Shown here piece by piece: positions 23,109 to 57,804 of a stretch of DNA of 64,000 nt (its first letter is position 1; each line of letters begins with the position of its first letter). The stretch is from the sequence record NC_041917.1; one strand, written 5' to 3'. Made by a program: the position numbers and the translations under genes. The notes beneath the pieces are model-generated. The model did not search any database. It was not told the DNA's origin and saw only the letters and a program-made list of their open reading frames with translations.

Positions 23109-23455
23109 AAAGTAAAATTTATGCTGAACAAGAATTAACCGATGAAGAAAAGAAACAAAAAGAAGAACTGAAGGAAGATGCAAAACAGTTATCAGTACTG
23201 AGACAAGGTACAGTAACTGAAATCACAATGGGTGGACAAACTTTTCAAGTATCTGACCCTAAAAGGATTGAACAAGCAATATCTTTCTTAGAGAGACATG
23301 AAGAATCTTTATTCACATTAAGACAACGAATTAAAGAACAGAACAAAGCAATAAATGTATTAATTCAAGAAATTGAAAAATTGAAAGCTGATGTTCAAAG
23401 ATTGAAAGAGGAAAGTAATAATGGATTTGGATCACAAGAGTACTCAAACTATTAA
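23105..23455 (+). CDS. Coiled-coil hypothetical protein
   Basis: Heptad-rich C-half; ATGA overlap with the previous gene. Confidence 0.65.
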   Translation: MKSKIYAEQELTDEEKKQKEELKEDAKQLSVLRQGTVTEITMGGQTFQVSDPKRIEQAISFLERHEESLFTLRQRIKEQNKAINVLIQEIEKLKADVQRLKEESNNGFGSQEYSNY

Positions 23456-24071
23456 TTACAGGAAAGCAAGAACTGATGTTGACATTGATTTTAAAGATGG
23501 GAAATCAGTTATTGAACAACTTCCTTGTACTAGAAGTGTTGAGAAAATTACAGAAGATGGATTGATACCGCATAATAGTGGTGTACATTTTGATAATATC
23601 CCTGTAGATCCAATTACTGGACTCGCATCTATACAATATAAAGAAGCCGAAAGATTAGGATACCAAAAAGTGGATATTCTGTCTCAATCGGCTTATGAAC
23701 ATGTACGTGATCGAAATCACTTAAAAGAACTAATGAATAAAGAACCAGATTGGGATTTATTATTAGTACCTGAAATAGTAGAACAGTTGTCTCAAATTAA
23801 GAAACATATAACTTTGTTACATGTGTGGCGACCTAGTAGTATCGATGAATTAGCTATGTTTATTGCTATGATACGTCCAGGAAAACGTCAATGTCAAAGT
23901 ATGAATAGTTGGGATGAAGTGCGGGCTGTTATTTGGGATTATGATAGTATTGGACTCGATGCAGAAGGTAGAAAGTTAAGATACTTTAAAAAACCTCATG
24001 CATACGCATATAGTTTGATGATTGTGGTTCAGTTAAATGCTTTAGTAGAATTTCTTACTTCTTCTTCTTGA
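23421..24071 (+). CDS. DnaE (Pol III alpha)-like fragment: catalytic palm and fingers
   Basis: RTDVDIDF (PDFDVDF), HNSGVHF (HAGGVVI), KVDILSQ (KFDFLGL), AMIRPG (ALFRPG), FKKPHAYAY (FNKSHSAAY). Confidence 0.85.
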   Translation: MDLDHKSTQTINYRKARTDVDIDFKDGKSVIEQLPCTRSVEKITEDGLIPHNSGVHFDNIPVDPITGLASIQYKEAERLGYQKVDILSQSAYEHVRDRNHLKELMNKEPDWDLLLVPEIVEQLSQIKKHITLLHVWRPSSIDELAMFIAMIRPGKRQCQSMNSWDEVRAVIWDYDSIGLDAEGRKLRYFKKPHAYAYSLMIVVQLNALVEFLTSSS

Positions 24072-24408
24072 GAGCAATATTTCTACGTTTAATCCGTTTC
24101 GTCGGTAGATCACTTAAAGATATTACTGGTCCAGAAATTACTTTCACATGATCAGTATTAAAACGTTTTGTATAGTTTTCGAATTTTTCCATTTCCTCTT
24201 GCATAAAAAGGCAAATCGGAATAGTTCGATTACTTTGCCACCACCAGTTATTGGCTAAAAGTAGCAATTCTTCTTGAAGGGATTCTTCCATCTCATGAAA
24301 ACAATACAAAGTCATGTATTGTTTACTTTTGATTTTAATAATCCCATAATAGATTACATCGTCGTGCTCTATGACCGTCACGAACGGATAAGTTTTGTGT
24401 TCATTCAT
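24055..24408 (-). CDS. Hypothetical protein
   Basis: Convergent ORF with SD (GGAAG) and a TATAAATA at 24450-24457 on the minus strand. Confidence 0.65.
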   Translation of the reverse strand: MNEHKTYPFVTVIEHDDVIYYGIIKIKSKQYMTLYCFHEMEESLQEELLLLANNWWWQSNRTIPICLFMQEEMEKFENYTKRFNTDHVKVISGPVISLSDLPTKRIKRRNIALKKKK

Positions 24409-24449
24409 AGGACTTCCATAAATATTGTATAAAATGATAAATTATATAT

Positions 24450-24457
24450 TATTTATA
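24450..24457 (-). promoter_or_regulatory. T4 late promoter consensus TATAAATA
   Basis: Exact match on the minus strand, 42 nt upstream of the 24408 start. Confidence 0.55.
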
Positions 24458-24468
24458 GAGGTTAAAAC

Positions 24469-25440
24469 ATGGCACATTTCGGCGTATATATGTATCCTTA
24501 TAATAACGAAGTTTCTCTTGGCAATTTTAATATGCCTTTTAATAATGAGAAATTGACAATTTATAGAGGTGCAAACAATCCAATCAGTTTTACAGTACAT
24601 AATGCTGATGGAAAGTACACACTACTAAGCGACAATCAATATCTTGTATTCAGTATTTTTGATGCTCGAAACGATACAAGAATTTTCGAAGTACTTCTTG
24701 AAAAGCTTTTACCATCATGGGTATCAGAAGCTGGTCAAGCAAGACCAACAATTAATAACAAACAAAAAGTCTACTATGGCTGTATTGTACCTGCGGGTGT
24801 TCTACAAGATTTAAGTGTAGGTTCTAAGTACCGTTGGAGTATAACAAAAGTTACCATGAATGGTGATTTAATTGAACCAACCGAGTACTTATACACTGGA
24901 TTAAATTTTGAAGCAAGTTCAGAATTAATACTAAGTAATTTAGCAGCACCAACATTTACTCCTAGTCAAGAAATCAGTGCACAACGTAATGCCTCTTGGT
25001 TACCTATAAAGGACAAAGAACAAAAACCTATTAGTAATGGGCTTTTTGGTGATTACGATGTTATGCATTCATCTCCATTGAGGGCTGACGCACAATATGG
25101 TTTAGTGGACGGTTTAAGTACTGCTGCATTTTATTTCCATAATTTTATTGGTAGAGTACAACTACAAGGTTGCCTTTCTAATGAAACACCAAAGGACGCA
25201 GAAGATTACAAATGGTTCATCATTAAGTTAGATGGGAAAGAATATATAGATAATCCAACTGACCCTAATGGTATTCCTATACCAATGGATGGTATACGTG
25301 CATTTAATTTCCACGGACAACTTATGTGGGTTCGTGTTGTATGTGCAATTCCACCAATTGTTAAGAACTATCCACCTAATGTAATTAAGAAGGATTACAA
25401 TCCTTTAAATACGATTCCTAAGATTCTAATCCGTAGATAA
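24469..25440 (+). CDS. Probable virion structural protein
   Basis: Beta-rich; IYRGANNPISFTVHNADGK motif of a type seen in large-myophage structural genes. Confidence 0.5.
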   Translation: MAHFGVYMYPYNNEVSLGNFNMPFNNEKLTIYRGANNPISFTVHNADGKYTLLSDNQYLVFSIFDARNDTRIFEVLLEKLLPSWVSEAGQARPTINNKQKVYYGCIVPAGVLQDLSVGSKYRWSITKVTMNGDLIEPTEYLYTGLNFEASSELILSNLAAPTFTPSQEISAQRNASWLPIKDKEQKPISNGLFGDYDVMHSSPLRADAQYGLVDGLSTAAFYFHNFIGRVQLQGCLSNETPKDAEDYKWFIIKLDGKEYIDNPTDPNGIPIPMDGIRAFNFHGQLMWVRVVCAIPPIVKNYPPNVIKKDYNPLNTIPKILIRR

Positions 25441-25441
25441 T

Positions 25442-25470
25442 TGGAATGTCCTATAAAAATGTGGTATAAT
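25442..25470 (+). promoter_or_regulatory. Putative middle-type promoter TGGAAT-N17-TATAAT
   Basis: Consensus match upstream of primase. Confidence 0.75.
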
Positions 25471-25499
25471 ATTTGGAGTACAGTCATAAAAGGAATTGA

Positions 25500-26546
25500 A
25501 TGATGAATCAAGTACAAAATATTATCGCAAACATTGTCCACGATCCTGCACCAATTATGGATCGTTGGAATCAACATAATTGCCCTGCTTGTACATCTAG
25601 AGGGCAATCAAGACCTGATACAAAAGGCCGTGGCAACCACATGTTCTTGAACGATGGTTCTGTAGCCTATAATTGTTTCAACTGCCACTTAAAGACTGTA
25701 TGGACACCTGGAAAGTACATTAGTAAAGATATGGATGCTTTACTAAGATCTTATGGTGCATCAGAAAAAGAAATGGCACAAATAAAATTCATCGTTAAAG
25801 AAATGGTAGAAAGCGGTGACTATGAAGTACAGGAAAACAGTGCTTCAAAAATCTATCAAAAAATAGTAAGACGTGAACTACCTCAAGGTGCAAGACCATT
25901 TTTGGATTGGGCTAATGATCCTGTCATTCCACCTGACTTTATTAAAGTCATTAATGCAATTAATGAGCGTAATCCGTATATGCTGGACTTAGATTTATAT
26001 TGGAGTCCATCGAAAGAATTTTACATGCATCAACGTTTTATCATTCCATATTATATGAATGGTCAAATTATTGGTTATACTGCTCGGCATATGGACGTAA
26101 ATAGCGAATATCGTTATAGAAATCAAGTAAGCACGAGCATTTTTTATAACTTCGATTTGTTGAATGATGATCGGGTTAAAGTAATATTAGTTGCAGAAGG
26201 ACCAATTGATGCTGCACTAATGGGTGGTTTATCTGCAAATAACTATTTCTTATGTGCATCTCAATTGGAGTTGTTGCATAAAGCACAAGAACGTGGTAAA
26301 AAAATAGTTATTGTACCAGATAGAGATAAAGATGGTTTAGTAACAATAGAACAAGCAATAGAGCACGGATTCAGTGTAGCAATGCCTGACTTTGGTGCTG
26401 TACGTGATGAAAATGGAATTCGTCACATTAAGGATTTTGATGAAGCATGTGCTAAATTTGGTAGATTATTCTGTTTACAGATGATTCACAATAGCATCTA
26501 TGATGATAAATTCGATATAAGAGTACAAACTGAAAAATGGATTTGA
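25500..26546 (+). CDS. 61: DNA primase (gp61-like)
   Basis: Zn-finger CPAC...CFNC; TOPRIM VAEGPIDA and VPDRDKDG; adjacent to the helicase. Confidence 0.88.
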   Translation: MMNQVQNIIANIVHDPAPIMDRWNQHNCPACTSRGQSRPDTKGRGNHMFLNDGSVAYNCFNCHLKTVWTPGKYISKDMDALLRSYGASEKEMAQIKFIVKEMVESGDYEVQENSASKIYQKIVRRELPQGARPFLDWANDPVIPPDFIKVINAINERNPYMLDLDLYWSPSKEFYMHQRFIIPYYMNGQIIGYTARHMDVNSEYRYRNQVSTSIFYNFDLLNDDRVKVILVAEGPIDAALMGGLSANNYFLCASQLELLHKAQERGKKIVIVPDRDKDGLVTIEQAIEHGFSVAMPDFGAVRDENGIRHIKDFDEACAKFGRLFCLQMIHNSIYDDKFDIRVQTEKWI

Positions 26547-26553
26547 GGTTTAA

Positions 26554-28035
26554 ATGGCAATTAATACAAACACGGACGTTAAGAAATATGATATACAATA
26601 CCAACTCTATTTGCTATCGCAAATTTTTAGTACACCAGATTTATATGTAAGGTGTAAGAATGTATTAAAACCGGATTATTTTGATAAAGAATATCATTCT
26701 AGTATTCAATATGTACATGACTATTCTTCCAAATATAATGTAACTCCAACGTTAAATGACATTAAACACAATTCTGATTTTTCATTTAATGAAACTCCAG
26801 TTGGTGATTTGAATCAGCAAGCAGTACTTGATAGTGTTGGTGAATTTTGTCGTCATAAAGCTTTAGCTTTAGCAATCCAACAAGGAATGGAACTTGTAAA
26901 CCAAAAACGTTATGGTGGAATTGAAGAACTCATTCGTGAAGCAATGTTGGTAACTGTACAAAATGATTTAGGTTTAGACATTTATGAAGATCCTGAAGAA
27001 GTTATTAGTTCACTAGCAAATATGCAAGGTACTTTTAAATCAGGATGGGAAACTCTTGATTATAAATTGTTTGGTGGTTTTGGTCGTCAAGAATTAGAAA
27101 TATTTGCTGCTGCCTCCGGTGGTGGTAAATCTGTAGTACTTCAAAATTTGGCAGTTAATTTCAGTAAAGCTGGATTAAATGGTGCATATATTACATTAGA
27201 ACTTGCAAAAGAATTGGTTGCAGTTCGTATCTATGGTATGTTAGTAAACACTGCTCAAAATCGTGTCAAAATTGATATTGATGAAACAGCGGCTAAAGTT
27301 AAGATTGAAGAAAGAACAAATGGTAAATTACGTATCCACCGTTTACCAGAATCCGTAACCACCGTTAATGATATTGAAAGTTATATTCGTGAACTACAAA
27401 TTAAGACTGGTATTAAACTAGACTACGTTTGTGTTGACTACTTAGATCTATTAACATCAGATCGTTGTGGTCCAAATGATAAATCGAATGCTTTCGTAAA
27501 AGATAAGTTTGTATCGGAAGAATTACGTGCACTTGCAATGAAAATGGATTTAACTGTATTCACAGCTTGTCAGTTCAACCGTAGTGGTGTTAGTGGTGAA
27601 GATGTTAAAAGTCAAGCACAGATTGCTGGTGGTATTTCTAAAATCTATACTGCGGATAACGTAATTTATATTGATGCACGTAAAGAACGTGGTGAGATGG
27701 TATTTGACTTCCAAAAAACACGTAACAGTTCAGCAGTAGGTTCACGTCTAGTTATGTCATATGATGTAGATTCATTACGTGTACTAGATCATCAGCAAAC
27801 TATTCAAGAAATGCAGATTAATACTTCATTTAAACACAGTGGAAAAGTACTTATAGGTAATGGTAATTTGGCGGCACATCCAACAATATCTGCCCCAAGT
27901 GCGTTGAATAAGTTACAAAATACTTTAACAACAGTAAGTCAAAAAACGAACACTACTTTGCCAGATGATATAAATACAAAAAAGGCTGATGAGAAAGTTT
28001 CTAGTATGAGAAACTTTTTGAATGGTAGGACGTAA
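26554..28035 (+). CDS. 41: Replicative DnaB-like helicase (gp41-like)
   Basis: Walker A AASGGGKS, ITLEL, CVDYLDLL, TACQFNRSG, QKTRN. Confidence 0.93.
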   Translation: MAINTNTDVKKYDIQYQLYLLSQIFSTPDLYVRCKNVLKPDYFDKEYHSSIQYVHDYSSKYNVTPTLNDIKHNSDFSFNETPVGDLNQQAVLDSVGEFCRHKALALAIQQGMELVNQKRYGGIEELIREAMLVTVQNDLGLDIYEDPEEVISSLANMQGTFKSGWETLDYKLFGGFGRQELEIFAAASGGGKSVVLQNLAVNFSKAGLNGAYITLELAKELVAVRIYGMLVNTAQNRVKIDIDETAAKVKIEERTNGKLRIHRLPESVTTVNDIESYIRELQIKTGIKLDYVCVDYLDLLTSDRCGPNDKSNAFVKDKFVSEELRALAMKMDLTVFTACQFNRSGVSGEDVKSQAQIAGGISKIYTADNVIYIDARKERGEMVFDFQKTRNSSAVGSRLVMSYDVDSLRVLDHQQTIQEMQINTSFKHSGKVLIGNGNLAAHPTISAPSALNKLQNTLTTVSQKTNTTLPDDINTKKADEKVSSMRNFLNGRT

Positions 28036-28039
28036 AACT

Positions 28040-28309
28040 ATGGCAAATAAAAAGCACAATCTTCTGGATAGTATCGTTAACTATACTTCTGATAAAGAAA
28101 AATTACAAAGTTTGGGAAATCGTGCAGACCACGCAATCAATGCAGTTATAAACCTACTTGATAGTATAGAAGAAGATTTTGATCAAGAAGAAGCTGATGA
28201 TTTAAGGCGTCGATTGTTTCTTAGTATTAAAAATCGTGACTATCGCAAATTCGAAAAAGGGCTAGAAAATTTAGCCCTATCAGACAAGCGTAAGAATAAA
28301 GGTGATTAA
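28040..28309 (+). CDS. Conserved hypothetical protein
   Basis: Helical ORF; SD TAGGA. Confidence 0.7.
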   Translation: MANKKHNLLDSIVNYTSDKEKLQSLGNRADHAINAVINLLDSIEEDFDQEEADDLRRRLFLSIKNRDYRKFEKGLENLALSDKRKNKGD

Positions 28310-28310
28310 T

Positions 28311-28475
28311 ATGAAAAATAAAAAGATTAATGAAAATGCTTCTTCTGGTGCTACAAGTGCTGGTGGTATTGCATCAGTAAGTGGTGGATTAAATTATCCT
28401 CTTATAAGCCGTTTACCTCCTACTAATTTCTTTGGCTATAAAGAATATAAACCTAAGAAAAAGAAAAAGGATTAA
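28311..28475 (+). CDS. Small protein absent from the ORF track (54 aa), probable internal head protein
   Basis: MKNKKINENASSGATSAGGIASVSGG...KPKKKKKD; SD AAGGTG; fills the gap exactly between the flanking genes. Confidence 0.7.
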   Translation: MKNKKINENASSGATSAGGIASVSGGLNYPLISRLPPTNFFGYKEYKPKKKKKD

Positions 28476-28476
28476 T

Positions 28477-28875
28477 ATGAATTCCTATACATTTTATACA
28501 ATTAATACTGTTATAGATATTGGGGATGGTAACACACCACCAATTAATGATGGTATTTTTACAGGGGCTATGAACCTTTGTAGATTAGTTGAAAGTGTAA
28601 TGATATTTGACAGACCTATGATGGTTAGTGTAGTAAGGACTGAAGTTGATTTGAGTAAAAACAATAATGCTGCATTCTATAATTTACCGTCAGCATGGGG
28701 TGAATGTATTGTTAGTACTTTTAAATTTGCACTACCTATGGATGTGAACGTAAACTGTAACGGTATTCCATTAGTACTTCCTACTGAAGTTAACGGCACT
28801 AGATTAACAAAGTTTAATAGTGTAACTTCAGAACGTAACATTAGTATTTCAAAGCAAACCTTTTCCCGTACATGA
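28477..28875 (+). CDS. Hypothetical, probably structural protein
   Basis: SD AAGGA before ATG 28477; the track's longer start overlaps the small ORF above. Confidence 0.6.
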   Translation: MNSYTFYTINTVIDIGDGNTPPINDGIFTGAMNLCRLVESVMIFDRPMMVSVVRTEVDLSKNNNAAFYNLPSAWGECIVSTFKFALPMDVNVNCNGIPLVLPTEVNGTRLTKFNSVTSERNISISKQTFSRT

Positions 28876-28921
28876 TAAATATCTTCATGTACAGAAAAGG
28901 TTTTTCTTTTTGGAGATAATA

Positions 28922-29836
28922 ATGGATATACAACAAACAGCACAAGAGTTACAAAAGTTTGCAGATGCTAATGGATTGCAGATGGATGTTAACCAAGCAT
29001 TGAGTGCAATGGACGCTGGTGATTTCGTAGAAATTAACCAAGCAATGGATAATTCTGACAACAGAACTATCATGCAAGTATTACAAAAGTACAAAGCACG
29101 TACTAATGAAAATTATCAGTACTTTGATGGAACAACACTATCAGAATCTGACGAAATTAATAACATCAATTCAATGGGTGTAGATGCACTAATTGAAGCA
29201 TATCGTGATAATGTTCATGGAGCATTTTATGATTGTTCTCACTTAACACTAAGTGAAATGAGAACATTAGTGTATGAAGATCTTGCAAGTACTTTAAGTG
29301 CAAATCAAACCGCTAATAGAAATACTACAACACAGAAAACACAAGTAAACCCACAAACTCAAGCTAAATTAAAACAGGCTGAATTGCAGCAAAATGCAAA
29401 TAACAGTTCCTTTAAGGTTTCTGTTCCTGGTGATAGTTCTGGTACAACTCAAGTTGCACCTATTGTTGGCGTTGATGTTGGTCCAACACCACAGCAAACA
29501 TTAGTTGTTACTAAGAATAATGAAAAACCAAATCAAGTTAATGTATTTGGTTTAGATGATGTTCAGGCAGTACAAGAAGATGACGAACATGATGATGTGG
29601 GTTCACAAGAAGTTATGGCACCACAAGCACCTGCTGATAATATTGAACAGGTTGATTCACCATTTACTCAAGAAAATCCAGGATTGGGTGAATTATCACG
29701 TGAAATTGGAAGAATCGAAGGTGATCAATATGATACTTCAGGTGAAGAAAGTCCTGAAGGTAATGAAGCAATGAACAATGAAGATGAGATGATTTCTCAA
29801 ATATTGGATTTTTGTTCACGGATGAGAGGTAGATAA
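28922..29836 (+). CDS. Probable internal head protein
   Basis: Gln/Asn/acidic low complexity; TLSES- and LVYED-type E motifs. Confidence 0.5.
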   Translation: MDIQQTAQELQKFADANGLQMDVNQALSAMDAGDFVEINQAMDNSDNRTIMQVLQKYKARTNENYQYFDGTTLSESDEINNINSMGVDALIEAYRDNVHGAFYDCSHLTLSEMRTLVYEDLASTLSANQTANRNTTTQKTQVNPQTQAKLKQAELQQNANNSSFKVSVPGDSSGTTQVAPIVGVDVGPTPQQTLVVTKNNEKPNQVNVFGLDDVQAVQEDDEHDDVGSQEVMAPQAPADNIEQVDSPFTQENPGLGELSREIGRIEGDQYDTSGEESPEGNEAMNNEDEMISQILDFCSRMRGR

Positions 29837-30054
29837 TGAGAGCAGTCGATACAAAAAATGGTTATTCTGTTATCGTATCGAATGAAGAATATCGCCTTAT
29901 AAAAAAGATTGATGCAAACATTAAAGTTCCAGTTGAATCATTATCAGAGTACTATCAAGAATTGGGTGAAAAACTTTATTCTCGTGGTGTATTAAATAAA
30001 GAAGAAAATGATGAAACTGAGTATTTTGTATCAATTAAAAGGAGTAAGCAATGA
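29836..30054 (+). CDS. Hypothetical protein
   Basis: Translationally coupled ORF. Confidence 0.65.
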   Translation: MRAVDTKNGYSVIVSNEEYRLIKKIDANIKVPVESLSEYYQELGEKLYSRGVLNKEENDETEYFVSIKRSKQ

Positions 30055-30854
30055 GTGATGATTTCGGAGAATGGGAACAACGTAAACAAGGTGTAGACCT
30101 TATGAGCGATATTATGTCTGCATTTGATGATATTGAAGAAGGTCGTCCTGTACCAAAAAAATTACCAGATGGAAGTACGTTTGTTAATGATTTCGACCAA
30201 ATCAATCGTGCTGAAACTAAAAATCTTTTATATGCTCTCCAAGAAGTAACTGGAGAGTATGGTAATATTCATCAGGAAGATGCACAATATTATGATCAAG
30301 GTGGTTACCTTGGGGAATCTAATGACTATGATAGTGTATATGGTTATTATGAACCACAAGAAGGGGAAACGTTTATTCAAGACCCTTCCTATGTAAAAAT
30401 GAAACAAGTTCAACCACAACAAAATGCATACAGTGCACCAGTACAGCAATCTAGGCCATATGTTCCAGGACAAAACTGGAGTATTATAGAAGAATCTGTA
30501 CTTGGGATGAAAAGTGCAAAAGTATACAGTATTAAATGTAATGCAACAAATCAGGTTGTTATGGATAACATCATGATGTATGAATCTGCTTTAGCATTGA
30601 AAACTATACTTAATGACGGTAAAACATTGACAGATCCTAAAGTACTTGGTATTATCAGTTCTGGTATTCAATATACTAGAGTTATTACTGAAGCTATCAA
30701 TGCAGCTAAGAAACGTCAACAAGTTCTAAAAGAATCACGGTACGATAAGGCTCAAGAACTTGATAAAGAAATTGCTGAACATAAAAGTAAAGCAACTGAA
30801 CTTAAAGAGCGAGTACTAAACTTCTTACGAGAAGAAGGATTCATAACTAAATAA
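30051..30854 (+). CDS. Hypothetical, probably head-associated protein
   Basis: Coupled ORF in the late-type cluster. Confidence 0.6.
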   Translation: MSDDFGEWEQRKQGVDLMSDIMSAFDDIEEGRPVPKKLPDGSTFVNDFDQINRAETKNLLYALQEVTGEYGNIHQEDAQYYDQGGYLGESNDYDSVYGYYEPQEGETFIQDPSYVKMKQVQPQQNAYSAPVQQSRPYVPGQNWSIIEESVLGMKSAKVYSIKCNATNQVVMDNIMMYESALALKTILNDGKTLTDPKVLGIISSGIQYTRVITEAINAAKKRQQVLKESRYDKAQELDKEIAEHKSKATELKERVLNFLREEGFITK

Positions 30855-30886
30855 GGATAGAAATTTCATTTATAAGGAAATAACAA

Positions 30887-31543
30887 ATGACTAAACAATT
30901 TTCAAAGATGATGGAATCTGCTAACCGCGTGGAAGCAATGAGTTTTATTCAACTTAATGAATCAAACATTGAGAAAGCTGAAATCGTTCTGGCGGTAAAA
31001 GGTGAAATCGTTGATAAGCTACAACGTCAAGCAGAAGTTATTAATAACATGGGCGTTGACGTACTTGGTCCATTGCTAGACCGTATTAAAGCTGAACATG
31101 GTGTTCCAGCAGCAGATTCATTCCGTAATAACATTAGTGGTCTATTGGATCATGCAGTGAAAACTATTATGGATGTTAAAGATAAAATCAGTACTGAAAC
31201 TCTTAAACTTACTGGTGATATTACTAGTTCTCCAGATGTTGCAGATTTAGGTTCAGACGAGGTGATTGATGACGTTTCACTTGATGTTGATGGTGATAAC
31301 TTCGATTTTGAAGCTGACGCTGAACTAGGTGCAGAAGATGATCTAGATGCAGATATTATGAGTGAACCAACACCAATGGATCGTGAGATGAAAGAATCTA
31401 CTCAACCAAAACGCTTCGGTATTCAACTAGAAAGTGTTAAAGGTACTGTTGGTAATAAGTATTTTAATTCCAAAAAAGAAATGAATACTTGGCTACAAGA
31501 GAACGAAAGTAAGATTGCTAAGGTAATCAAGATTCTAAAATAA
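30887..31543 (+). CDS. Probable prohead core or scaffold-like protein
   Basis: Helical core flanked by MMES, LNES, MKES, QLES motifs and an acidic linker. Confidence 0.5.
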   Translation: MTKQFSKMMESANRVEAMSFIQLNESNIEKAEIVLAVKGEIVDKLQRQAEVINNMGVDVLGPLLDRIKAEHGVPAADSFRNNISGLLDHAVKTIMDVKDKISTETLKLTGDITSSPDVADLGSDEVIDDVSLDVDGDNFDFEADAELGAEDDLDADIMSEPTPMDREMKESTQPKRFGIQLESVKGTVGNKYFNSKKEMNTWLQENESKIAKVIKILK

Positions 31544-31555
31544 TTGGAGGGTGAT

Positions 31556-31891
31556 ATGAGGTTCAGTCAGATAACCGAAGATGCACCAGGTAAAGATATA
31601 CGTAATATGATTAGTACTATAGCTTTATCATTAATCGCTACTGGTAGAGAACAAATAAGTATTCAATCATTGATTAATGAAATAAAAAAGCGTACTAATA
31701 TCGATGTTCCATATAATGTAATGATGGATATTCTTAATGAACTTCCATTTGTTCAGGATGCAAATTCTGATATGGTAACACTTCAAGGCTCTGATACATC
31801 ACCTGATGGTGATAATGCAGAATCATCAGAAGAACAAGTTACTGATATGGCAACTAAAGCAGCATCATCAAATTTAAAACAAGATATTTGA
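31556..31891 (+). CDS. Probable internal head protein
   Basis: MRFSQITED N-terminus typical of head-packaged, protease-processed proteins of T4-like phages. Confidence 0.5.
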   Translation: MRFSQITEDAPGKDIRNMISTIALSLIATGREQISIQSLINEIKKRTNIDVPYNVMMDILNELPFVQDANSDMVTLQGSDTSPDGDNAESSEEQVTDMATKAASSNLKQDI

Positions 31892-31917
31892 AACAAACGA
31901 AAAACATGTGCTATAAT
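31889..31917 (+). promoter_or_regulatory. Putative middle-type promoter TGAAAC-N17-TATAAT
   Basis: Consensus match upstream of the exonuclease. Confidence 0.75.
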
Positions 31918-31930
31918 ATAGGAGTACAGG

Positions 31931-32632
31931 ATGTACATTCCACCTATCGTTAATAAGTACACGTATGTTGGTTACAATCGAATCGAAGGCGGCTCAGAAG
32001 GCCGCCTTTATTCTACCCCAAGTGGTAACCTACCATCCGTGACTACAATTTTAAGTGCCACTTCTGATAATGAAGGATTGAAGAAATGGCGTGAATTTGT
32101 TGGAGAAGACAAAGCTAATGCAATAACTTTGGAAGCTACAACAGTCGGTACGTTCATGCATGAAAATCTAGAACGAAGACTCGTTGGAGATCAAGATCAT
32201 CTTGGTGGTATGCCAATTCGGGTACTAGCAAGAAATATGGCTGATTGTATTCAACAAAATGCTTGGCCTAAGATCAATGAAGTATGGGGTCAAGAAGTTC
32301 CATTGTTTTACGAAGGATTATGGGCTGGTACTACTGACTTAGTTGGTATACATGATGGCCTACCCGCAATAATGGATTATAAAAATTCACGAAAACCCAA
32401 AACATGGGAATACATCGAAAATTATCGTCTTCAACTCGCAGCTTATGCACTAGCACATAACGCAATGTTCGGTACGGATATTAACCGTGGCGTAATCTTT
32501 ATTTGTGTGCGTAAAGACCCTGCAAATCTTCAATACCAAGAATTTGTTGTTGAAGGTGCTGATTTTGAAGAAGCTAAACGTATGTGGATTGAAAGAGTAG
32601 AGCAATTTTATGCTCAACGTGGAGAAATGTAA
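31931..32632 (+). CDS. PD-(D/E)XK exonuclease (lambda-exo/RecB-like)
   Basis: PSVTTILS, GTFMHENLE, EVPL...AGTTDLVG...MDYKNS, LQLAAYA. Confidence 0.88.
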   Translation: MYIPPIVNKYTYVGYNRIEGGSEGRLYSTPSGNLPSVTTILSATSDNEGLKKWREFVGEDKANAITLEATTVGTFMHENLERRLVGDQDHLGGMPIRVLARNMADCIQQNAWPKINEVWGQEVPLFYEGLWAGTTDLVGIHDGLPAIMDYKNSRKPKTWEYIENYRLQLAAYALAHNAMFGTDINRGVIFICVRKDPANLQYQEFVVEGADFEEAKRMWIERVEQFYAQRGEM

Positions 32633-32652
32633 AAAAAATGGGAACAAGAGCA

Positions 32653-33192: not shown

Positions 33193-33220
33193 TTCTATAC
33201 TTTAATAGGAGATTTTAGTT

Positions 33221-33799: not shown

Positions 33800-33819
33800 A
33801 AAAGGCACCCGCCTTTTTT
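33798..33819. terminator. Terminator
   Basis: A6-GGC-ACCC-GCC-T6. Confidence 0.6.
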
Positions 33820-45378: not shown

Positions 45379-47543
<2,165 letters not shown>

Positions 47544-47544
<1 letters not shown>

Positions 47545-49976: not shown

Positions 49977-49985
49977 GGTACAAAT

Positions 49986-50351
49986 ATGATAAGCACGATT
50001 TTTATTCTACTCATAGCATTTCAAATAAAGCATTTTCTTTGTGATTACCCATTACAAGGAAGATTTATGTTAGGTAAGTTCAATAAAGAAGGTTGGGAGT
50101 TACCATTAGCTGCACATGCTGGTGTTCACTTCATAGGAACATTCTTGATTGCATTGTTCTTCGGATTCTGGATTGCATTAACAGTTGCAGTACTAGATTT
50201 TGTTATTCACTTCGTAGTTGATAAAATAAAAGTTGAAGCTTCACGCAAAACTGATCATAGTAAACCTGAGTTCTGGTGGTATCTAGGTTTAGACCAAATG
50301 GCACACCACTTAACACATTACATGATAATTGCTATATTAGTTCTACTATAA
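49986..50351 (+). CDS. DUF3307-like membrane protein
   Basis: KHFLCDYPLQ, AHAGVH, HFVVDKIK, LGLDQMAH. Confidence 0.78.
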   Translation: MISTIFILLIAFQIKHFLCDYPLQGRFMLGKFNKEGWELPLAAHAGVHFIGTFLIALFFGFWIALTVAVLDFVIHFVVDKIKVEASRKTDHSKPEFWWYLGLDQMAHHLTHYMIIAILVLL

Positions 50352-50356
50352 ATATT

Positions 50357-50386
50357 AACGATGCAGAGATGCATCGTTATTTTTTT
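50357..50386 (+). terminator. Rho-independent terminator
   Basis: AACGATGCA-GAGA-TGCATCGTT followed by A and a T-tract. Confidence 0.75.
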
Positions 50387-50414
50387 GAAACAAAGAAACA
50401 AATTATGCTATAAT
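50386..50414 (+). promoter_or_regulatory. Putative middle-type promoter TGAAAC-N17-TATAAT
   Basis: Consensus match upstream of the topoisomerase. Confidence 0.75.
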
Positions 50415-50447
50415 ATACTGGCTAAGAAACAATAAAAGGAATTAGAA

Positions 50448-52436
50448 ATGGCAAAGGAAAAGAAAAGTTCTGTTCTAGCTGAACACGGTGTTCAACAATT
50501 AACTGAATATCAACATGCTCGAATCCGTACTGAAATGTACTTAGGTTCGAAGTCTGAACATGAGCAACCAGTTCTTCTATTCAACGAAGATGGTTATACT
50601 GTGCAAAATTTAGGTTGGGTTCCTGCCCTATTAACATCATTCCGAGAAATCGTTGATAACTCGTTAGATGAATTCGTTAAAGCTGGTACTAAAGATCCAG
50701 TACTACGTGTTACATATAATGAAGATGAACTTGATTTTGAAATTAGCGATAACGGTCGTGGTATTCCAATTGATTATGTTCCAGAAACACAAAAACATGT
50801 GTGTACTATGGTACTAACCGAGATGAAAACTGGTCGTAACTTTAATGATGATGAACGTAACAATGTCGTTGGTATGAACGGTCTTGGTGGTTCAGTTGTT
50901 ATGATTGTAAGTGAGAAAGCTGAAATCGAAATTCACCGTGCAGGTAAGCCTTACAAAACTGACAAAGCAAATGCAGAATATGATGGTATGTATAAATTCA
51001 CACAAAAGTTCACTGAAGGTACAGCAATGTTCCCTGAACTTGGAATTGAAGAACCAAGTATTCGCAAAGTAAAAGCTGATAAGACTGGAACTACGGTTCG
51101 ATTCAAAATCAGTAAAGAAGTATTCAAAGTACACACACTACCTATTCAACTAGTATATAGTATTCTTAAAGAAGTTGCAGCGGCGAATCCATCGTACAAA
51201 ATCTTTTTGAATGATCAACGAATTACTGTGAATAAAAAAGGTTTATTTAGTTCTGCTAAGAATACAATGACTCTTAAAGTTGATGACAGTGAAACTGGAC
51301 TTGACAGTACTTTCTACATTGTACCCAATGTAGTACAGGGTCTTAACAAGAACCTACATATGCAAGGTCTTGTTAACAACGCACCATCACTAGAAGGTGG
51401 TACACACTTAGATACGTTCCAACAGAAATTTGCACTTGGTGTTATCAATGCATTGGATCGTATTCCAAAAAATAGAAAACGCAATCTAAAACCAAACCGT
51501 TCTGATATTGAAGAAGGTCTGTTGATTTACAACATCACTAAGATGAATACACCAACATTCAACTCTCAAATCAAAACAAAACTAACTAATGAAAACGTCA
51601 TAAAGCCAGTACAAAACGCAATGAGCGATGAATTCTTTAATGAACTTGTTAAGAAAAATACCGAGTGGGTTGAAGAAATTTATACTCGTTGTGCTGAACG
51701 TACCAATAAAAAGGATGCAGACGAAGATCGTAAAATGGCAAAACGTCTTCTAAAAGGCAAAGTAGCTAAACTACGTGATGCAAATGGTCAAAACCGAAGT
51801 GAATGTATTCTTCTAATTGCAGAAGGTGATTCAGCAGTAAGTTCTATGACAGCGGCACGTAACTCTACTATTCATGGCATTCTTCCATTACGTGGTAAGA
51901 TTCAAAACGTAAATGGAAAAGAGAAGACAAAAGATCTAATGGGTACTGCGGATAAGCCATCTGCAATTCATGATATTATGGCTTCTTTAAACATTGTTCC
52001 TGGCGAAAAAGCAGTTCGTTCAAATATGAACTTTGGTAAACTTTATATCTGTGCAGATGAAGATGAAGATGGTAAGAACATCGGTGCTCTAGTAGTAAAC
52101 TTCTTCTATAAATTCTGGCCTGAATTGTTTGCTGATCCAGAAGATCCATTCATTTATATTTTCAAAACCCCATTCATTATTTTAGAAAAGGGCAAAGAAT
52201 CTAAGTACTACTATGGTCATAATGTCCATGAGTATAATCCTGATGATTGGAAAGGTTGGAAAGCAACTCGTGCTAAAGGGTTAGGTACTCTTGAAGTATC
52301 AAACTTCAGAGATGCACTAGCAAATGGTGTAGCAATCGCAATTACTGATGATGGTTCATTAGGGGAAACTCTAGATCTTATCTTCAATAAAGAACGTGCT
52401 GATGACCGTAAAGAATGGACTAAAGAAGACGTGTAA
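50448..52436 (+). CDS. 39: Type II topoisomerase ATPase/TOPRIM subunit (gp39+gp60 fused)
   Basis: EIVDNSLDE, DNGRGIP, GMNGLGG, AEGDSA, PLRGKIQNV, DEDEDG, KGLG. Confidence 0.95.
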   Translation: MAKEKKSSVLAEHGVQQLTEYQHARIRTEMYLGSKSEHEQPVLLFNEDGYTVQNLGWVPALLTSFREIVDNSLDEFVKAGTKDPVLRVTYNEDELDFEISDNGRGIPIDYVPETQKHVCTMVLTEMKTGRNFNDDERNNVVGMNGLGGSVVMIVSEKAEIEIHRAGKPYKTDKANAEYDGMYKFTQKFTEGTAMFPELGIEEPSIRKVKADKTGTTVRFKISKEVFKVHTLPIQLVYSILKEVAAANPSYKIFLNDQRITVNKKGLFSSAKNTMTLKVDDSETGLDSTFYIVPNVVQGLNKNLHMQGLVNNAPSLEGGTHLDTFQQKFALGVINALDRIPKNRKRNLKPNRSDIEEGLLIYNITKMNTPTFNSQIKTKLTNENVIKPVQNAMSDEFFNELVKKNTEWVEEIYTRCAERTNKKDADEDRKMAKRLLKGKVAKLRDANGQNRSECILLIAEGDSAVSSMTAARNSTIHGILPLRGKIQNVNGKEKTKDLMGTADKPSAIHDIMASLNIVPGEKAVRSNMNFGKLYICADEDEDGKNIGALVVNFFYKFWPELFADPEDPFIYIFKTPFIILEKGKESKYYYGHNVHEYNPDDWKGWKATRAKGLGTLEVSNFRDALANGVAIAITDDGSLGETLDLIFNKERADDRKEWTKEDV

Positions 52437-52486
52437 AAATTAGTGGGGTACATGAAGTACCCTCAAATATCAAAGAGGCAAATGGA

Positions 52487-53896
52487 ATGCGTAAACCTAA
52501 AAAAATTGCAGAAGTAGTTCCTAATGAACTAACTCTATTGAACTTTCAAAGTTCAGACTATATTAACCAATCATCCCTAGAATATGCGTTAAGTACTTTT
52601 GACCGTTCTCTACCAGGGATTGATGGTTTTAAAAACTCACAACGAAAAGCAATCTTTACTCTAAGCAAAATTAGTGGTGAGATCAAAACAGTATCTTGTG
52701 CAGGTCGTATGATTAGTGATGGTATCTATCTACACGGTGATGCTTCAGCTAGTGGTACATTGCAAAATCTAGCTAGTCCCGTAGTTAACAACTATCCACT
52801 AATTGGAAAGCGTGGTGGATTTGGTACACAGGTAAATCCTGAACCAGCTAGTCCACGTTATACTTATGTGAAGAAAACTAAAATTACTGAAGCTTTAGTA
52901 CTTCGTGATTTAGATGTTGTTCCGATGCAAGAGAACTATGATGGTACAACATATGAACCAAAATTCTTCTTACCATTAATTCCACTAGCGTTACTAGGAG
53001 TAGATGGAACAGCGACAGCATATAAAAGTTTTATTTTTCCTTATCGTATGAATGATATTATTGATAATACTATTCGTGCTATTGATGGTAAAGAATTACT
53101 ACCAATGACTCCATACTATGCAAGTTATGGTGCTAACGATTATGTTGAAGATCGTGGAGAAGGTAAGTATACATTCTTTGGTAAAGCTGAAGTTATTGAT
53201 GCAAGTACTGTAAGAATTACTGGTTTATCACCACGTATGAAACTAGAAAAATTTGTTGAAGATTTGATTGCAATGGAAGATTCTGGTAAAATTCGTAGTT
53301 ATGATGATAACAGTTCAGGTAAAGTAGATATTACCATTAAACTACCACGTGGTCTTAGTACTACATGGAAAGAAATGGATGTGCTTCAATATTTTGACAT
53401 TTCAACAAAATTAGCACATACCCTTAATGTTTTAGGTGAAAATGGAAAAGTAAAAAGTTACACCGATGTTCAGAGTATAATCTCGGACTTCGTTCAGTTC
53501 AGATTCAAGTACTACATTAAACGTTATGAAAAGTTACTTGCTGACGCAGATGCAGAGGTTCGTTATAAAATTCTTGTAAAAGAATGTTTTGATAACGACA
53601 TGACTGGTAAGATTAAATCTTTCCAAAACCGTGCAGAACTAGTAGAATTTGTTACTTCATTGAATAATGAAATTGAAGCATCAGATGAAAATATTCAAGG
53701 AATTGTTAATTTCCCAAGTTATCGGTGGACTCAAGAAAACTATGATAAAGTACTTCAAGATATTGAAGATGCATTAGCTAAGATGGATGAGTATAATGAT
53801 TTGCTTGCTAATCATGATAAAATCTGGAATATCTACAAAGATGAACTTATTGAACTACGTAATATGAACATCGAATATAAAGAAGATACTGAATAA
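52487..53896 (+). CDS. 52: Type II topoisomerase breakage-reunion subunit (gp52-like)
   Basis: DGFKNSQRK, YLHGDAS, ASPRYT (catalytic Tyr), ENYDG. Confidence 0.95.
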   Translation: MRKPKKIAEVVPNELTLLNFQSSDYINQSSLEYALSTFDRSLPGIDGFKNSQRKAIFTLSKISGEIKTVSCAGRMISDGIYLHGDASASGTLQNLASPVVNNYPLIGKRGGFGTQVNPEPASPRYTYVKKTKITEALVLRDLDVVPMQENYDGTTYEPKFFLPLIPLALLGVDGTATAYKSFIFPYRMNDIIDNTIRAIDGKELLPMTPYYASYGANDYVEDRGEGKYTFFGKAEVIDASTVRITGLSPRMKLEKFVEDLIAMEDSGKIRSYDDNSSGKVDITIKLPRGLSTTWKEMDVLQYFDISTKLAHTLNVLGENGKVKSYTDVQSIISDFVQFRFKYYIKRYEKLLADADAEVRYKILVKECFDNDMTGKIKSFQNRAELVEFVTSLNNEIEASDENIQGIVNFPSYRWTQENYDKVLQDIEDALAKMDEYNDLLANHDKIWNIYKDELIELRNMNIEYKEDTE

Positions 53897-53900
53897 ACCA

Positions 53901-53928
53901 AAAGGACGCTAATGCGTCCTTTATTTTT
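53901..53928 (+). terminator. Rho-independent terminator
   Basis: AAAGGACGC-TAAT-GCGTCCTTT followed by ATTTTT. Confidence 0.75.
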
Positions 53929-53984
53929 TAATTGCGAACATATAATAAATACCACAAAGCTTTTTATGTTTTTGGAGATAATAT

Positions 53985-56900
53985 ATGGCAAACTTCGAAC
54001 CCAAATGGGATTTGAGAGCTGATACCAATTCAATTAAAGAAGGACAGACCACATACTTTAGACTACGAATTTCTAAAAGTCAAACAACTTCACCAAATAA
54101 TGAATATGTACTTCAAGATGATCAATATCTTGAATTTACATTTAATATTGTCGGGGCAGGGGAAACTTTAGAAGAACGTGATTTTAATGTATCTATAGGT
54201 GAAAGTACTTCTTCTTTAGTTCCAATCGGTGAAGCTGGAACTGGAACCCCTCATATTCAGGGTAAACATGTAGTAAAACTTAGTAGAAAAGATTTCCAAT
54301 TAAGTTCAAGCGTAACATTCATTGATGCATTCTTTTTTAAAATAGAATGTCCTGAAGATGGTATATGGGATGGTCCAGAATCATTAACATTTAACATTGA
54401 CAGCATAAATGAAATTACTCTTTTAGATGGTCAAATTGCAAATACAATGCCAAGTGGGGTATTGGGAACTAGTACACAAGTACTGAATTATAATACTGCT
54501 GGAGAAATTTGGCTAACACCTAATTTAACGACCCACGGTGATAATCTTTATACAATTGGTGGTATTGGATATGGTGCCGAAAGTAGATTGTTCATTCAAG
54601 CATTTGGACAAAGTAGAACAATAAATGGTGTAACTAATGTTTTTATGCCATCGTATGAAGTGCAAGATATAACAATGTCAGATATTCCATCTGAACATAT
54701 TACTGGTTCAGGAACAATTTTAGTACCGGATGAATCGGCACTACCTTCTATTCCAGAATATCCTATAACTTTAGGTACTACTAGAAATCAAATAAATTCA
54801 TTTTATATGAAGAATGTTGCTAATTTAATGTCTGGTGCTGGTTGTATTATTCAAGGAACTACACTAACAGATCATAATAATGAACTCTATTATAGTTATG
54901 GAATAAGAGTATATGCAAATACTGGTTTCAAATTAATGTGTCCAGCAGAAGCAGAAAGTATATATGTAAGTAATGTAAATGCTGTAAATGCAGGTGGTAT
55001 AAATTCTTCATTGTCTGAATTAACAGAATATGGTATATTAGATACGAACAAAATTGGTAGATGTGATATATATGGTAATGTAAAACATGAACCACAAACA
55101 ATAGTCTTACCACCATCCACTACCGGTGGTCAAATGGTAATTTATATTCGAGTTAAGGTTAGTAATACAATTTGCCCACCTTGGATTTCATTTAATGTAA
55201 TATCATTTAATAGTCCAATTCTAAAATCTTCTAATACATTGGATAATAGAATTTATATTAATACAAACAGTACTGCATTAAATTCAGTTGAACTAGATAA
55301 CATTTTACATGCAGCAGTTGCTGGTTCTGGATGGACAACATCATATAATGCCAATAATACAAAAAATCAAGTACCAAATACTATAGAACCAGTTGTGATT
55401 CGAAAATTAGAGGAAAACTCTATTATGATCAGAGATGAAATTGGAAATATGGTACAATCAGGATTGAAATTTAATGCTAATGGACAATTTGTTCAAACAT
55501 TCATTTATGATTCAGAACCAGTAGATGCATATTTTCGTGCAACTATTCTTTCTATAAAGGATTTTTATAATACTGATACTGATGCATACTATGTTGGTAA
55601 AAGATTCCGTGCATATAATGTATGGGTTTGTCCAGCAGATGTTACTAACTTCTCAACAAAACCAAAACCTGGACATTTATATCAATTAAAAGATACTAAA
55701 GTATATCCTTATGTTGTTAAAGATACTGTTGTTGAAGGTATAACTAAAATTTTATTTGAAGAAGATAAATGGTACGATTTAGGATTGTATAATGAATCAT
55801 TAGGTGCTAATATCATAGGTTCCGAAAGGATGTTTAGAATTGTAGTTAATGATGATACTGGTACTGATATTTCTTTTGAAACTGATTCCAACTTAGGTGA
55901 AATTCATGTTGGTGAATATTTTGGTCATACGGTTTATCCAAAAATCGTTGCAACTGGCTCAGAATTAATAACCTACACAATAAATGCAAGTACTTCACCA
56001 AATGATATTACAAAGTACGGAATAGATTTAACTGCTGATGGATTTATTGTAGGGGAAGCATATGCATTAAGTACTGATTTTTCTGCCAATGATGACATAC
56101 CTTTGCAGTTCGATGTAGTTGCAACTGGTAAAAACGGTAAATCATTGACACAACGTTTTAAAATTCGTATAATTCGTGGTTTAGGGCAAAACTTCTTACA
56201 TGCTGATATTTGTCCATCACTTTCATTAGAACGTGCATGGTTCAGAATGATTAGTACTACATCATTTAGTAGAGCAAATTACTATCGTGCATCAGATCCA
56301 AGATATGGTGTTAAGAAAGTCCCACGTATTCTTATGAAAGAAAACTTCGTTGATCCTAATAAGAATTGGGAAGGGATAAAACAAACAGTATTAAATATTC
56401 GAAATGGTATTGTTGATACAGCACATGGTGCACCTACACCAGATGGTTCATTCCGACTAGTACTAGGGAATTATAAATTACGTTCAGCACTTGACAATCA
56501 AGGAAATGTACTGTATGATGTTTTATACAGAGAGTTACATTCAGAAGGAACACAAGTAAGTTTAAGTTTAAATCCATTGAAATATACTGATTATTCAACA
56601 TCACTTATTTCAGAAATTTATGGTCTACGTCAAAATGTGTACAACATTGTTGGTGAAGATACTGTGAACTTATTAACTGATCCTACAGATTTGAATAATC
56701 GTGGTATAGTAGTTGATCCTATTAACGGATTATCAGTTGAAATGCTAGATACAGTTCCTCGTTATATGAACCATCCATATGTTGAAGATAACATTAAGCC
56801 AATGTACTTCCCATGTATACCAGTTGCTTACTTACAACCAGGACAAGGGGAAGTATTCTTTAATACATTGATTCAAAATAACGAACATGGTACATTACTC

Positions 56901-57014
56901 AATACTGAGTTTGAAGTTTCTGGAGTTGAATTCAGTTACTTCGTACAAGACAATGAGAGATACGTACCAGAAACCTTTATGGCCTCATTAAGAGTGCCTA
57001 ACCTATTTCAATAA
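53985..57014 (+). CDS. Large virion structural protein (baseplate/tail, Ig-like domains)
   Basis: 1009 aa, beta-rich; Calx-beta/Ig-like N-terminus (SIKEGQT...DGIWDGPESLTF); late-type AATAAATA at 53944-53951. Confidence 0.6.
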   Translation: MANFEPKWDLRADTNSIKEGQTTYFRLRISKSQTTSPNNEYVLQDDQYLEFTFNIVGAGETLEERDFNVSIGESTSSLVPIGEAGTGTPHIQGKHVVKLSRKDFQLSSSVTFIDAFFFKIECPEDGIWDGPESLTFNIDSINEITLLDGQIANTMPSGVLGTSTQVLNYNTAGEIWLTPNLTTHGDNLYTIGGIGYGAESRLFIQAFGQSRTINGVTNVFMPSYEVQDITMSDIPSEHITGSGTILVPDESALPSIPEYPITLGTTRNQINSFYMKNVANLMSGAGCIIQGTTLTDHNNELYYSYGIRVYANTGFKLMCPAEAESIYVSNVNAVNAGGINSSLSELTEYGILDTNKIGRCDIYGNVKHEPQTIVLPPSTTGGQMVIYIRVKVSNTICPPWISFNVISFNSPILKSSNTLDNRIYINTNSTALNSVELDNILHAAVAGSGWTTSYNANNTKNQVPNTIEPVVIRKLEENSIMIRDEIGNMVQSGLKFNANGQFVQTFIYDSEPVDAYFRATILSIKDFYNTDTDAYYVGKRFRAYNVWVCPADVTNFSTKPKPGHLYQLKDTKVYPYVVKDTVVEGITKILFEEDKWYDLGLYNESLGANIIGSERMFRIVVNDDTGTDISFETDSNLGEIHVGEYFGHTVYPKIVATGSELITYTINASTSPNDITKYGIDLTADGFIVGEAYALSTDFSANDDIPLQFDVVATGKNGKSLTQRFKIRIIRGLGQNFLHADICPSLSLERAWFRMISTTSFSRANYYRASDPRYGVKKVPRILMKENFVDPNKNWEGIKQTVLNIRNGIVDTAHGAPTPDGSFRLVLGNYKLRSALDNQGNVLYDVLYRELHSEGTQVSLSLNPLKYTDYSTSLISEIYGLRQNVYNIVGEDTVNLLTDPTDLNNRGIVVDPINGLSVEMLDTVPRYMNHPYVEDNIKPMYFPCIPVAYLQPGQGEVFFNTLIQNNEHGTLLNTEFEVSGVEFSYFVQDNERYVPETFMASLRVPNLFQ

Positions 57015-57023
57015 GGAGGATTT

Positions 57024-57326
57024 ATGTTTCATCCGTTTTTCGATCCTTCATCTTTAAGTGATAAAGAACTTTATGATAAAATCACTGAAGTTTCGCTTCG
57101 TATAAGTGCTGCTCGTTCAGCAGGTATACAATACGAAATGATACAATCTATGTTCACCGTAATTCAAGCTTGTGAGTTTGAGATTCAGAATCGCCAAGCT
57201 CACAAAGACTTGGAGCAAGCGGCAAAAGAAGATAATTGTATTTTTGATTCAGACAGCTATTTAAATGACAAAGATGATAAGAAACATGAAAGTACAAGAA
57301 AACAGAACTATAAGCGAGGATGGTGA
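57024..57326 (+). CDS. Hypothetical protein
   Basis: SD AGGAGGA. Confidence 0.7.
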   Translation: MFHPFFDPSSLSDKELYDKITEVSLRISAARSAGIQYEMIQSMFTVIQACEFEIQNRQAHKDLEQAAKEDNCIFDSDSYLNDKDDKKHESTRKQNYKRGW

Positions 57327-57804
57327 TGTACGTTTAAATCTGAACGCCGTGGTTTATGCAATAAATTGCGGCACAGATATTACATATATCCAGCTTAATG
57401 AGCAAGATGAATTTGAACGTTTAAAGTTCAATGACAACTGCAAGAAATTTGGACTATCGGAACGTATGTTAGATTACACCATAGAACATGATAAAAATCA
57501 TGAATTATGGCGGTATGATCCAGCTTATGATAAAATCAACTTAGAAGATTATTTTCTTTCTTTATGTAGTACTGATATAGAACGTGATAGAGTACTATAT
57601 GAATTAAGTTTATATGAAAACTATAACATGACTAAACTATTACGCTGTATGATATGGTTGGTAGATTACCTAGAAGAACATAATATTTTTTGGGGATTAG
57701 GTCGTGGAAGTTCCGTAAGTAGCTTCTGTTTATACTTGATTGGATTACACTTAGTTGATTCAGTTAAATATGAATTAGATGTGAATGAATTTTTGAAATG
57801 GTAA
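57265..57804 (+). CDS. DnaE (Pol III alpha)-like fragment: N-terminal palm part (start may be 57274 or 57286)
   Basis: ERDRVLYEL..YE..NM..LL.CMIWLVDYLEEHNIFWGLGRGSSVSSFCLYLIGLHLVDSVKYELDVNEFL aligns with DnaE ERLETEL...[34 protein letters not shown]. Confidence 0.85.
   Translation: MTKMIRNMKVQENRTISEDGDVRLNLNAVVYAINCGTDITYIQLNEQDEFERLKFNDNCKKFGLSERMLDYTIEHDKNHELWRYDPAYDKINLEDYFLSLCSTDIERDRVLYELSLYENYNMTKLLRCMIWLVDYLEEHNIFWGLGRGSSVSSFCLYLIGLHLVDSVKYELDVNEFLKW

Follow-up and report, generated by a model that had tools for sequence, protein, structure and literature searches.

Serratia phage BF, a Rak2/GAP32-like jumbo myovirus of the genus Eneladusvirus with a genome of 357 kb, carries two widely separated genes, gp326 and gp285, whose products probably make up, between them, one minimal DNA polymerase core of the C family (Pol III alpha type). 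The whole stretch of DNA analysed here (the window) is 64,000 nucleotides long and equals bases 186001-250000 of the BF genome (NC_041917.1 / KY630187.1) at 100 % identity. The reading takes in a predicted heterodimer, predicted catalysis, a presumed preference for deoxyribonucleoside triphosphates (dNTPs) and a presumed role in the phage, and we hold it at a probability of roughly 0.65. Both open reading frames (ORFs) that a preliminary description of the window had quoted by their termini are present at the positions given in Table 1: the N half, gp326, runs through GLGRGSS and ends in VDSVKYELDVNEFLKW at its stop codon, and the C half, gp285, begins with MDLDHKSTQTINYRKARTDVDIDF. The two genes have 33.2 kb between them in BF, and RefSeq labels both alike as 'DNA polymerase'. 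A split minimal Pol III alpha was described in 'group 2.2' jumbo phages from sequence analysis by Iyer, Anantharaman, Krishnan, Burroughs & Aravind in 2021 (Viruses 13:63; PMC7824862), and the observation made in BF is thus confirmed but already known.

The homology of the N half is visible from its own sequence. gp326 matches the Pfam family PF07733 (DNA_pol3_alpha) above the gathering score (E 5e-8), with residues 105-178 covering profile positions 22-95. A profile of 24 N-half homologs places residues 102-174 on residues 320-392 of Escherichia coli alpha, and the protein ends at the equivalent of E. coli residue ~393. The palm segment, residues ~100-179, is preceded by an additional N-terminal region (residues 1-100) and includes the GS nucleotide-binding motif G146-R147-G148-S149-S150, in which R147-G148-S149 correspond to E. 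coli R362-G363-S364. The AlphaFold2 model of gp326 (predicted local distance difference test score, pLDDT, 83.5) was compared with the PDB by Foldseek, and the top 17 matches were all Pol III alpha or PolC.

For the C half, a profile of 27 sequences aligned with Mycobacterium tuberculosis DnaE1 in four collinear pieces, i.e. DnaE1 residues 413-424 (the DxD strand), 485-527 (a weak match), 568-667 (from the KxD strand to the RPG finger motif) and 773-787 (KSHA, the Lys-Ser-His helix). Weak matches to PF17657 (DNA_pol3_finger) were found in 12 of the 27 C-half homologs, and the C half of Ralstonia phage RsoM2USA matches that family above the gathering score. The AlphaFold2 model of gp285 (pLDDT 91) retrieved only Pol III alpha or PolC as its top 11 Foldseek matches in the PDB. 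Foldseek probabilities for Pol III alpha/PolC matches reached 1.00, and beyond these matches the scores of both halves drop to noise. Residues were numbered via E. coli K-12 dnaE, in which the motif reads D401-F-D403-V-D405; the catalytic pair D401/D403 therefore equals D19 and D21 of gp285, the first two Asp of DVDID. The catalytic pair and the roles of the E. coli active-site residues follow PMC8485763. Further equivalences are D23 with D405, K83 with K553, D85 with D555, R152-P153-G154 with RPG 639-641 and H193 with H760. The finger domain of gp285 is collinear with the DnaE fingers and ~80 residues shorter. The homologous part of the C half starts exactly where the N half ends, so that the segments encoded by the two genes adjoin within a single domain, as had been claimed for the palm in the preliminary description; in a fused relative, P0312 (see below), one PF07733 match crosses the junction, spanning profile positions 12-121.

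Residue counts were made over all collected homologs, ~270 for the C half and 119 for the N half. The catalytic aspartates are kept almost throughout (D19 in 268/268, D21 in 267/268 and D85 in 279/280), as are K83 (279/280), R152 (260/263) and H193 (251/256). D23 is retained in 263 of 268 sequences, three of the exceptions being Glu, and GRGSS is present in all 119 N-half homologs. Metal- and nucleotide-binding residues are the most conserved positions of the family. Variation of the aspartates, or frequent loss of one half from relatives, would by the preliminary description have spoken against its reading; the aspartates hold at the above counts and both halves are found in every lineage examined. 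Between BF and GAP32, the ratio of non-synonymous to synonymous substitution rates (dN/dS) is 0.042 for the C half and 0.043 for the N half, with dN of 0.052 and 0.047, respectively; gp285 and gp326 are both under strong purifying selection, at the same rates.

Both halves co-occur in Rak2-like phages, PA5oct-like Pseudomonas phages, Atu_ph07, Phosso, XacN1, RsoM2USA, RAS14 and an Alishewanella phage that is, at 141 kb, non-jumbo, as well as in the close relatives of BF, i.e. GAP32, CBB, RaK2 and 121Q. Throughout the phage genomes examined the halves are separate genes without exception, 4 kb to >200 kb apart. An exhaustive profile search gave 550 cluster representatives, nearly all of 185-216 residues. 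Neither half alone holds a complete active site, and this, together with co-occurrence, matching selection rates and single-chain relatives, argues that the two halves are one functional unit.

Single-chain relatives, with the halves in the expected order, number two (P0312 and P0376) among the best 150 of the 550 cluster representatives. P0312, of 375 amino acids, comprises a full N half (hhalign probability 99.9 %), a 10-residue linker and a C half. P0376, of 336 amino acids, is collinear apart from lacking most of the N-terminal extension. Searches for more fused forms gave only split C halves (homolog search with P0376), nothing (viral-contig scan with P0312) and only two ordinary full-length DnaE genes (metagenome scan). 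The fused forms are supportive of one unit rather than decisive; together with the equal evolutionary rates of the halves they lend indirect support to the predicted physical interaction. In a FastTree phylogeny, the rooting of which is unreliable, P0312 and P0376 fall in different subclades, each amid split forms, which suggests an old fission followed by rare re-fusions. Rooting of the C-half tree with DnaE outgroups failed, there being too few aligned columns, and the proposed order of events thus takes its whole weight from the placement of the fused forms in different subclades among split ones. P0376, on an 8 kb JGI metagenome contig (Ga0669126_0033275), lies directly downstream of a 552-amino-acid PF03090 'Replicase' and helix-turn-helix protein and overlaps the replicase stop codon, i.e. 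it is translationally coupled; the two genes together occupy L010 1516-4181. This contig, on which a peptidoglycan-binding protein, a DUF4238 protein and a methyltransferase are also encoded, may be a small replicon that relies on a replicase and a mini polymerase as one module.

What has been lost relative to bacterial alpha subunits is extensive, and the earlier statement that the PHP, thumb, HhH, OB and clamp-binding parts are largely gone is borne out by Pfam and by residue spans compared with E. coli alpha. No PHP domain was matched by Pfam in the BF halves, and only ~100 residues lie ahead of the palm segment. The thumb is cut to ~27 residues, with 27 residues from D23 to H51 and 62 from D23 to D85, versus 150 from D405 to D555 in E. 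coli. gp285 ends 23 residues past H193, one helix after the KxxH motif, whereas E. coli alpha runs 400 residues past H760, and gp285 is without the clamp-binding motif, HhH, OB fold and tau-binding C-terminal region.

Two other origins of the split were considered and rejected. An intein-split DnaE is ruled out by the lack of any Hint or intein Pfam match and of room for intein fragments, in agreement with the absence of intein termini recorded in the preliminary description. The N half extends 2 residues past its last DnaE-homologous position, and the C half has ~12 non-conserved residues before homology resumes; the HNS at gp285 residues 51-53 is downstream of the catalytic Asp residues, within a conserved palm motif. 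Frameshift or misassembly is likewise ruled out, since the split is kept in at least ~90 sequenced phage genomes with the halves kilobases apart.

A mechanism can be proposed in which an ancient gene fission would have cut a Pol-beta-like palm between the GS motif and the first metal-binding strand, and in which the two proteins would associate non-covalently, jointly completing the palm sheet. R147-G148-S149 of the N half would hold the triphosphate of the incoming nucleotide, and the C half would supply the metal ligands D19, D21 and D85 plus K83 and the RPG finger motif, while its putative steric-gate residue, His193, would exclude ribonucleotides. The assembled enzyme is predicted to be a small DNA-templated, dNTP-using polymerase of ~390 residues and, being without PHP, thumb, clamp-binding or OB modules, should be distributive on its own. 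Its place would be in the phage replisome, next to the T4-like family B polymerase, where its likely jobs would be extension of the primers of the adjacent primase before hand-off, or gap-filling/repair; these are the most plausible roles. From the earlier structural reading, the minimal palm with truncated fingers, the one split point and the distant genes are retained. The non-replicative role attached to it is not, as both halves lie in conserved replisome modules, although primer extension or hand-off, which had been listed under it, and repair may be among the functions. RNA modification and signalling-nucleotide synthesis, also listed there, are argued against by the kept steric-gate His, the kept finger motifs and the replisome context, all of which favour a templated DNA polymerase.

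Genes around the two halves are largely those of replication (Table 1). The C half sits in a module with the order UvsW helicase, small ORFs, C2H2 zinc-finger protein, C half, convergent small ORF, ~300-residue protein, primase and DnaB-type helicase, which is kept in BF, PAC2, Atu_ph07 and the Alishewanella phage. In BF, Paride, Atu_ph07 and RsoM2USA the N half is followed by 2-3 small ORFs, one of them GroES-like, and then by the clamp loader. The C half is consistently linked to the primase-helicase and the N half to the clamp loader. The two halves lie close together in RsoM2USA, where the N half, a GroES-like gene, an unknown gene, the clamp loader, two ORFs and the C half follow one another within ~5 kb. 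The full family B polymerase noted earlier alongside the pair is indeed complete, with the exonuclease and polymerase motifs of gp261 intact. These phages also keep a DnaQ-like exonuclease as a stand-alone protein (gp278), which might, as a hypothesis only, be a partner of the mini polymerase.

Table 1. Positions in the window of the two polymerase halves and of associated replication genes in Serratia phage BF
Feature	Position	Strand	Evidence or remarks
N half of minimal Pol III alpha (candidate), gp326, YP_009599822.1	57265..57804	+	Pfam, profile, model, conservation
C half of minimal Pol III alpha (candidate), gp285, YP_009599781.1	23421..24071	+	profile, homologs, model, conservation
Complete family B (T4 gp43-like) DNA polymerase, gp261	2268..5300	+	ExoI FDIET, ExoII, motif B KILLNSLYG, motif C YGDTDS, KKRY
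Stand-alone DnaQ/epsilon-like 3'-5' exonuclease, gp278	18166..19038	+	PF00929
Small convergent ORF, gp286, phrog_11637	24055..24408	-	overlaps C-half 3' end by 17 nucleotides
Primase gp288 and DnaB-type primase-helicase gp289	25503..28035	+	just downstream of C half in BF, PAC2, Atu_ph07, Slicko01
Clamp-loader AAA+ subunit, RFC/gp44-like, gp330	58891..59850	+	2-3 small ORFs downstream of N half

Several points weigh against a split, active polymerase core. gp285 searched alone gave no match in Pfam, and a sequence search of the PDB gave nothing significant, so that its homology had to be established from profiles, relatives and structure. Large deletions account for the modest Foldseek E-values (3e-3 and 6e-2) and for template-modelling (TM) scores of ~0.4; low TM-scores are expected where a ~200-residue protein is compared with one of ~1100 residues carrying large insertions. 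The equivalence of H193 with H760 depends on a short motif alignment, and each fused form is known from a single contig. With the thumb and all processivity modules gone, the pair is unlikely to be the main replicase, and its binding to DNA is uncertain. Linkage to replication genes shows association, not function, and in the literature on the pair no experiments were found on activity, transcript timing or the virion proteome.

Among more specific or competing accounts, we regard as tentative the proposal that the pair is a dedicated initiator polymerase coupled to the primase and functionally analogous to eukaryotic Pol alpha, which would extend the RNA primer with short DNA and hand off to the processive family B enzyme. 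If this were true, the phage would possess a two-polymerase replisome made of a bacterial-type C-family core and an archaeo-eukaryotic-type B-family replicase, and in a small replicon this two-step module would recur as the fused form next to a plasmid-type replicase/primase.

It is unlikely that the mini Pol III is a true replicase subunit for one strand, with family B serving the other and with processivity and proofreading supplied in trans by the clamp/clamp loader and gp278, although replicase sharing between mini Pol III and family B is among the options of Iyer et al. (PMC7824862). Linkage to the clamp loader and primase-helicase would fit such a division of labour, as would the conservation of a stand-alone epsilon-like exonuclease although the family B enzyme has its own exonuclease domain. 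However, neither a clamp-binding motif nor a thumb was found, and in T4-type replisomes one family B enzyme serves both strands.

Also unlikely, and if anything slightly more so, is that the pair forms an active Pol-beta-like nucleotidyltransferase that is non-templated, e.g. a terminal transferase, an RNA end-modifying enzyme or one for signalling/anti-defence nucleotide synthesis. Thumb, HhH, OB and clamp motif, and with them every module for gripping DNA or for processivity, are gone, and many non-templated transferases are found among the Pol-beta-fold enzymes. Conservation nevertheless extends to the steric-gate His and to the finger motifs, which place the template and the incoming dNTP, as the counts for R152 and H193 given above indicate, the neighbours are primase, helicase and clamp loader rather than defence or RNA-repair genes, and a fused relative is operonic with a plasmid-type replicase. 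Least probable is that both proteins have lost catalysis and are remnants of a degraded DnaE gene, kept as scaffold or regulator or acting independently of each other; extreme truncation, a literature without experimental activity and variable GenBank names (hypothetical or membrane proteins) would suit such relics, but the most conserved positions of the family are those that bind metal and nucleotide, dN/dS is ~0.04, >500 cluster representatives are of constant length, and re-fusions keep the correct order.

The split core favoured here can be set against several known systems. BF belongs to the group 2.2 phages, and nothing about its pair differs in kind from the system of Iyer et al. (PMC7824862), in which distant genes encode an NTP-binding N half and a Mg2+- and template-binding C half, without other Pol III domains and with a family B polymerase; those authors, who arrived independently at the conclusion drawn here, proposed that the split enzyme reconstitutes activity and models ancestral Pol III. 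The truncated N half had already been remarked upon in the earlier CBB genome paper. New here are the residue counts and selection data, confirmation of the C half by structure, a conserved synteny that differs between the halves, the 141-kb phage and the two fused relatives.

With bacterial DnaE/Pol III alpha (E. coli, Taq and M. tuberculosis; PDB 2hnh, 2hpi, 5lew) the pair shares, collinearly, the palm with its GS motif, D401/D403/D555, K553, RPG and H760. Unlike bacterial DnaE, which is one chain of ~1160 residues, it consists of two polypeptides totalling ~390 residues, is without PHP, beta-clamp motif, HhH, OB fold and tau-binding domain, and has a thumb of ~27 residues and fingers ~80 shorter. 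The split DnaE of cyanobacteria (DnaE-N and DnaE-C of Synechocystis/Nostoc) is likewise a C-family polymerase made from two distant genes, but its halves carry intein fragments and are spliced to one full-length chain, and its split site differs; without intein fragments the halves of the BF pair must, unlike cyanobacterial DnaE, stay separate. T4-like phages also have essential enzymes of DNA metabolism built from reassembling subunits, e.g. the family B polymerase 43A/43B and the topoisomerase gp39/gp60/gp52. Their pieces are usually adjacent and the splits often recent, whereas the BF-type fission is ancient, is found across very divergent phages and passes through the catalytic domain.

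If active, the two-chain enzyme of ~390 residues would be much smaller than any other C-family DNA polymerase. It would set the lower limit of what the bacterial replicase family needs for catalysis and serve as a model of the ancestral state, as Iyer et al. argued, and the phage replisome would combine B-family and C-family polymerases. It lends itself readily to biochemical study and perhaps to enzyme engineering. The many records that list the C half as 'hypothetical' or as a membrane protein would be corrected.

Database records for the two genes are uneven. GenBank entries of relatives give the N half as 'DNA polymerase III alpha subunit'; for the C half they have 'hypothetical' or 'putative membrane protein'. 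The latter label (GAP32, pEa_SNUABM_12/47/50) stems from a predicted transmembrane helix, which is the steric-gate helix at the C-terminal end of the polymerase fingers, and the label thus looks like a misannotation. A strong Shine-Dalgarno sequence, AAAGAGGAAAG, stands at 23404-23414 ahead of the C half, whereas no clear Shine-Dalgarno precedes either candidate start of the N half (57265 or 57286). The annotated start at 57265 gives a 62-nucleotide overlap with the upstream ORF gp325 (57024-57326), and the start at 57286 an overlap of 41 nucleotides. N-half relatives are annotated from the Met equivalent to 57286 (MKVQ...), and the true start is probably Met8 at 57286, giving 172 amino acids.

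Additional observations concern the genes adjacent to the halves. gp286, the small convergent ORF at the end of the C half, contains the motifs FPF and WWWxSxRxIPI and a basic KRIKRR tail, and its homologs are equally placed in PAC2, Atu_ph07 and the contig of the fused P0312. It might be a partner of the mini polymerase or regulate it. A T4-late-promoter-like TATAAATA is found at 24450-24457 on the minus strand, ~40 nucleotides upstream of the gp286 start. In the window, TATAAATA as a T4-type late promoter is not enriched (5 found vs 10.9 expected), and thus no expression timing can be inferred from it. gp283 (22389-23108, plus strand, phrog_11058), a conserved neighbour of the C half, starts with a C2H2 zinc-finger-like motif, CRFCDKEFKREGTLITHNC, and in Pseudomonas phage PAC2 a C2H2-domain protein is encoded directly upstream of the C half.

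Two GroES/Cpn10-like genes are present on the plus strand of the window, gp266 (7493-7780) and gp328 (58238-58558). gp328 lies between the N half and the clamp loader, an arrangement that recurs in RsoM2USA. Two genes downstream of the C half in RsoM2USA is a PF10127 RlaP protein (L007 2566-3579, minus strand), a Pol-beta-family nucleotidyltransferase of an RNA-repair pathway and the second Pol-beta-fold enzyme of that cluster. Elsewhere in the window, the terminase large subunit is annotated as two overlapping consecutive ORFs on the plus strand, gp272 (11500-12210) and gp273 (12200-13846), which may represent another split gene or a frameshift site.

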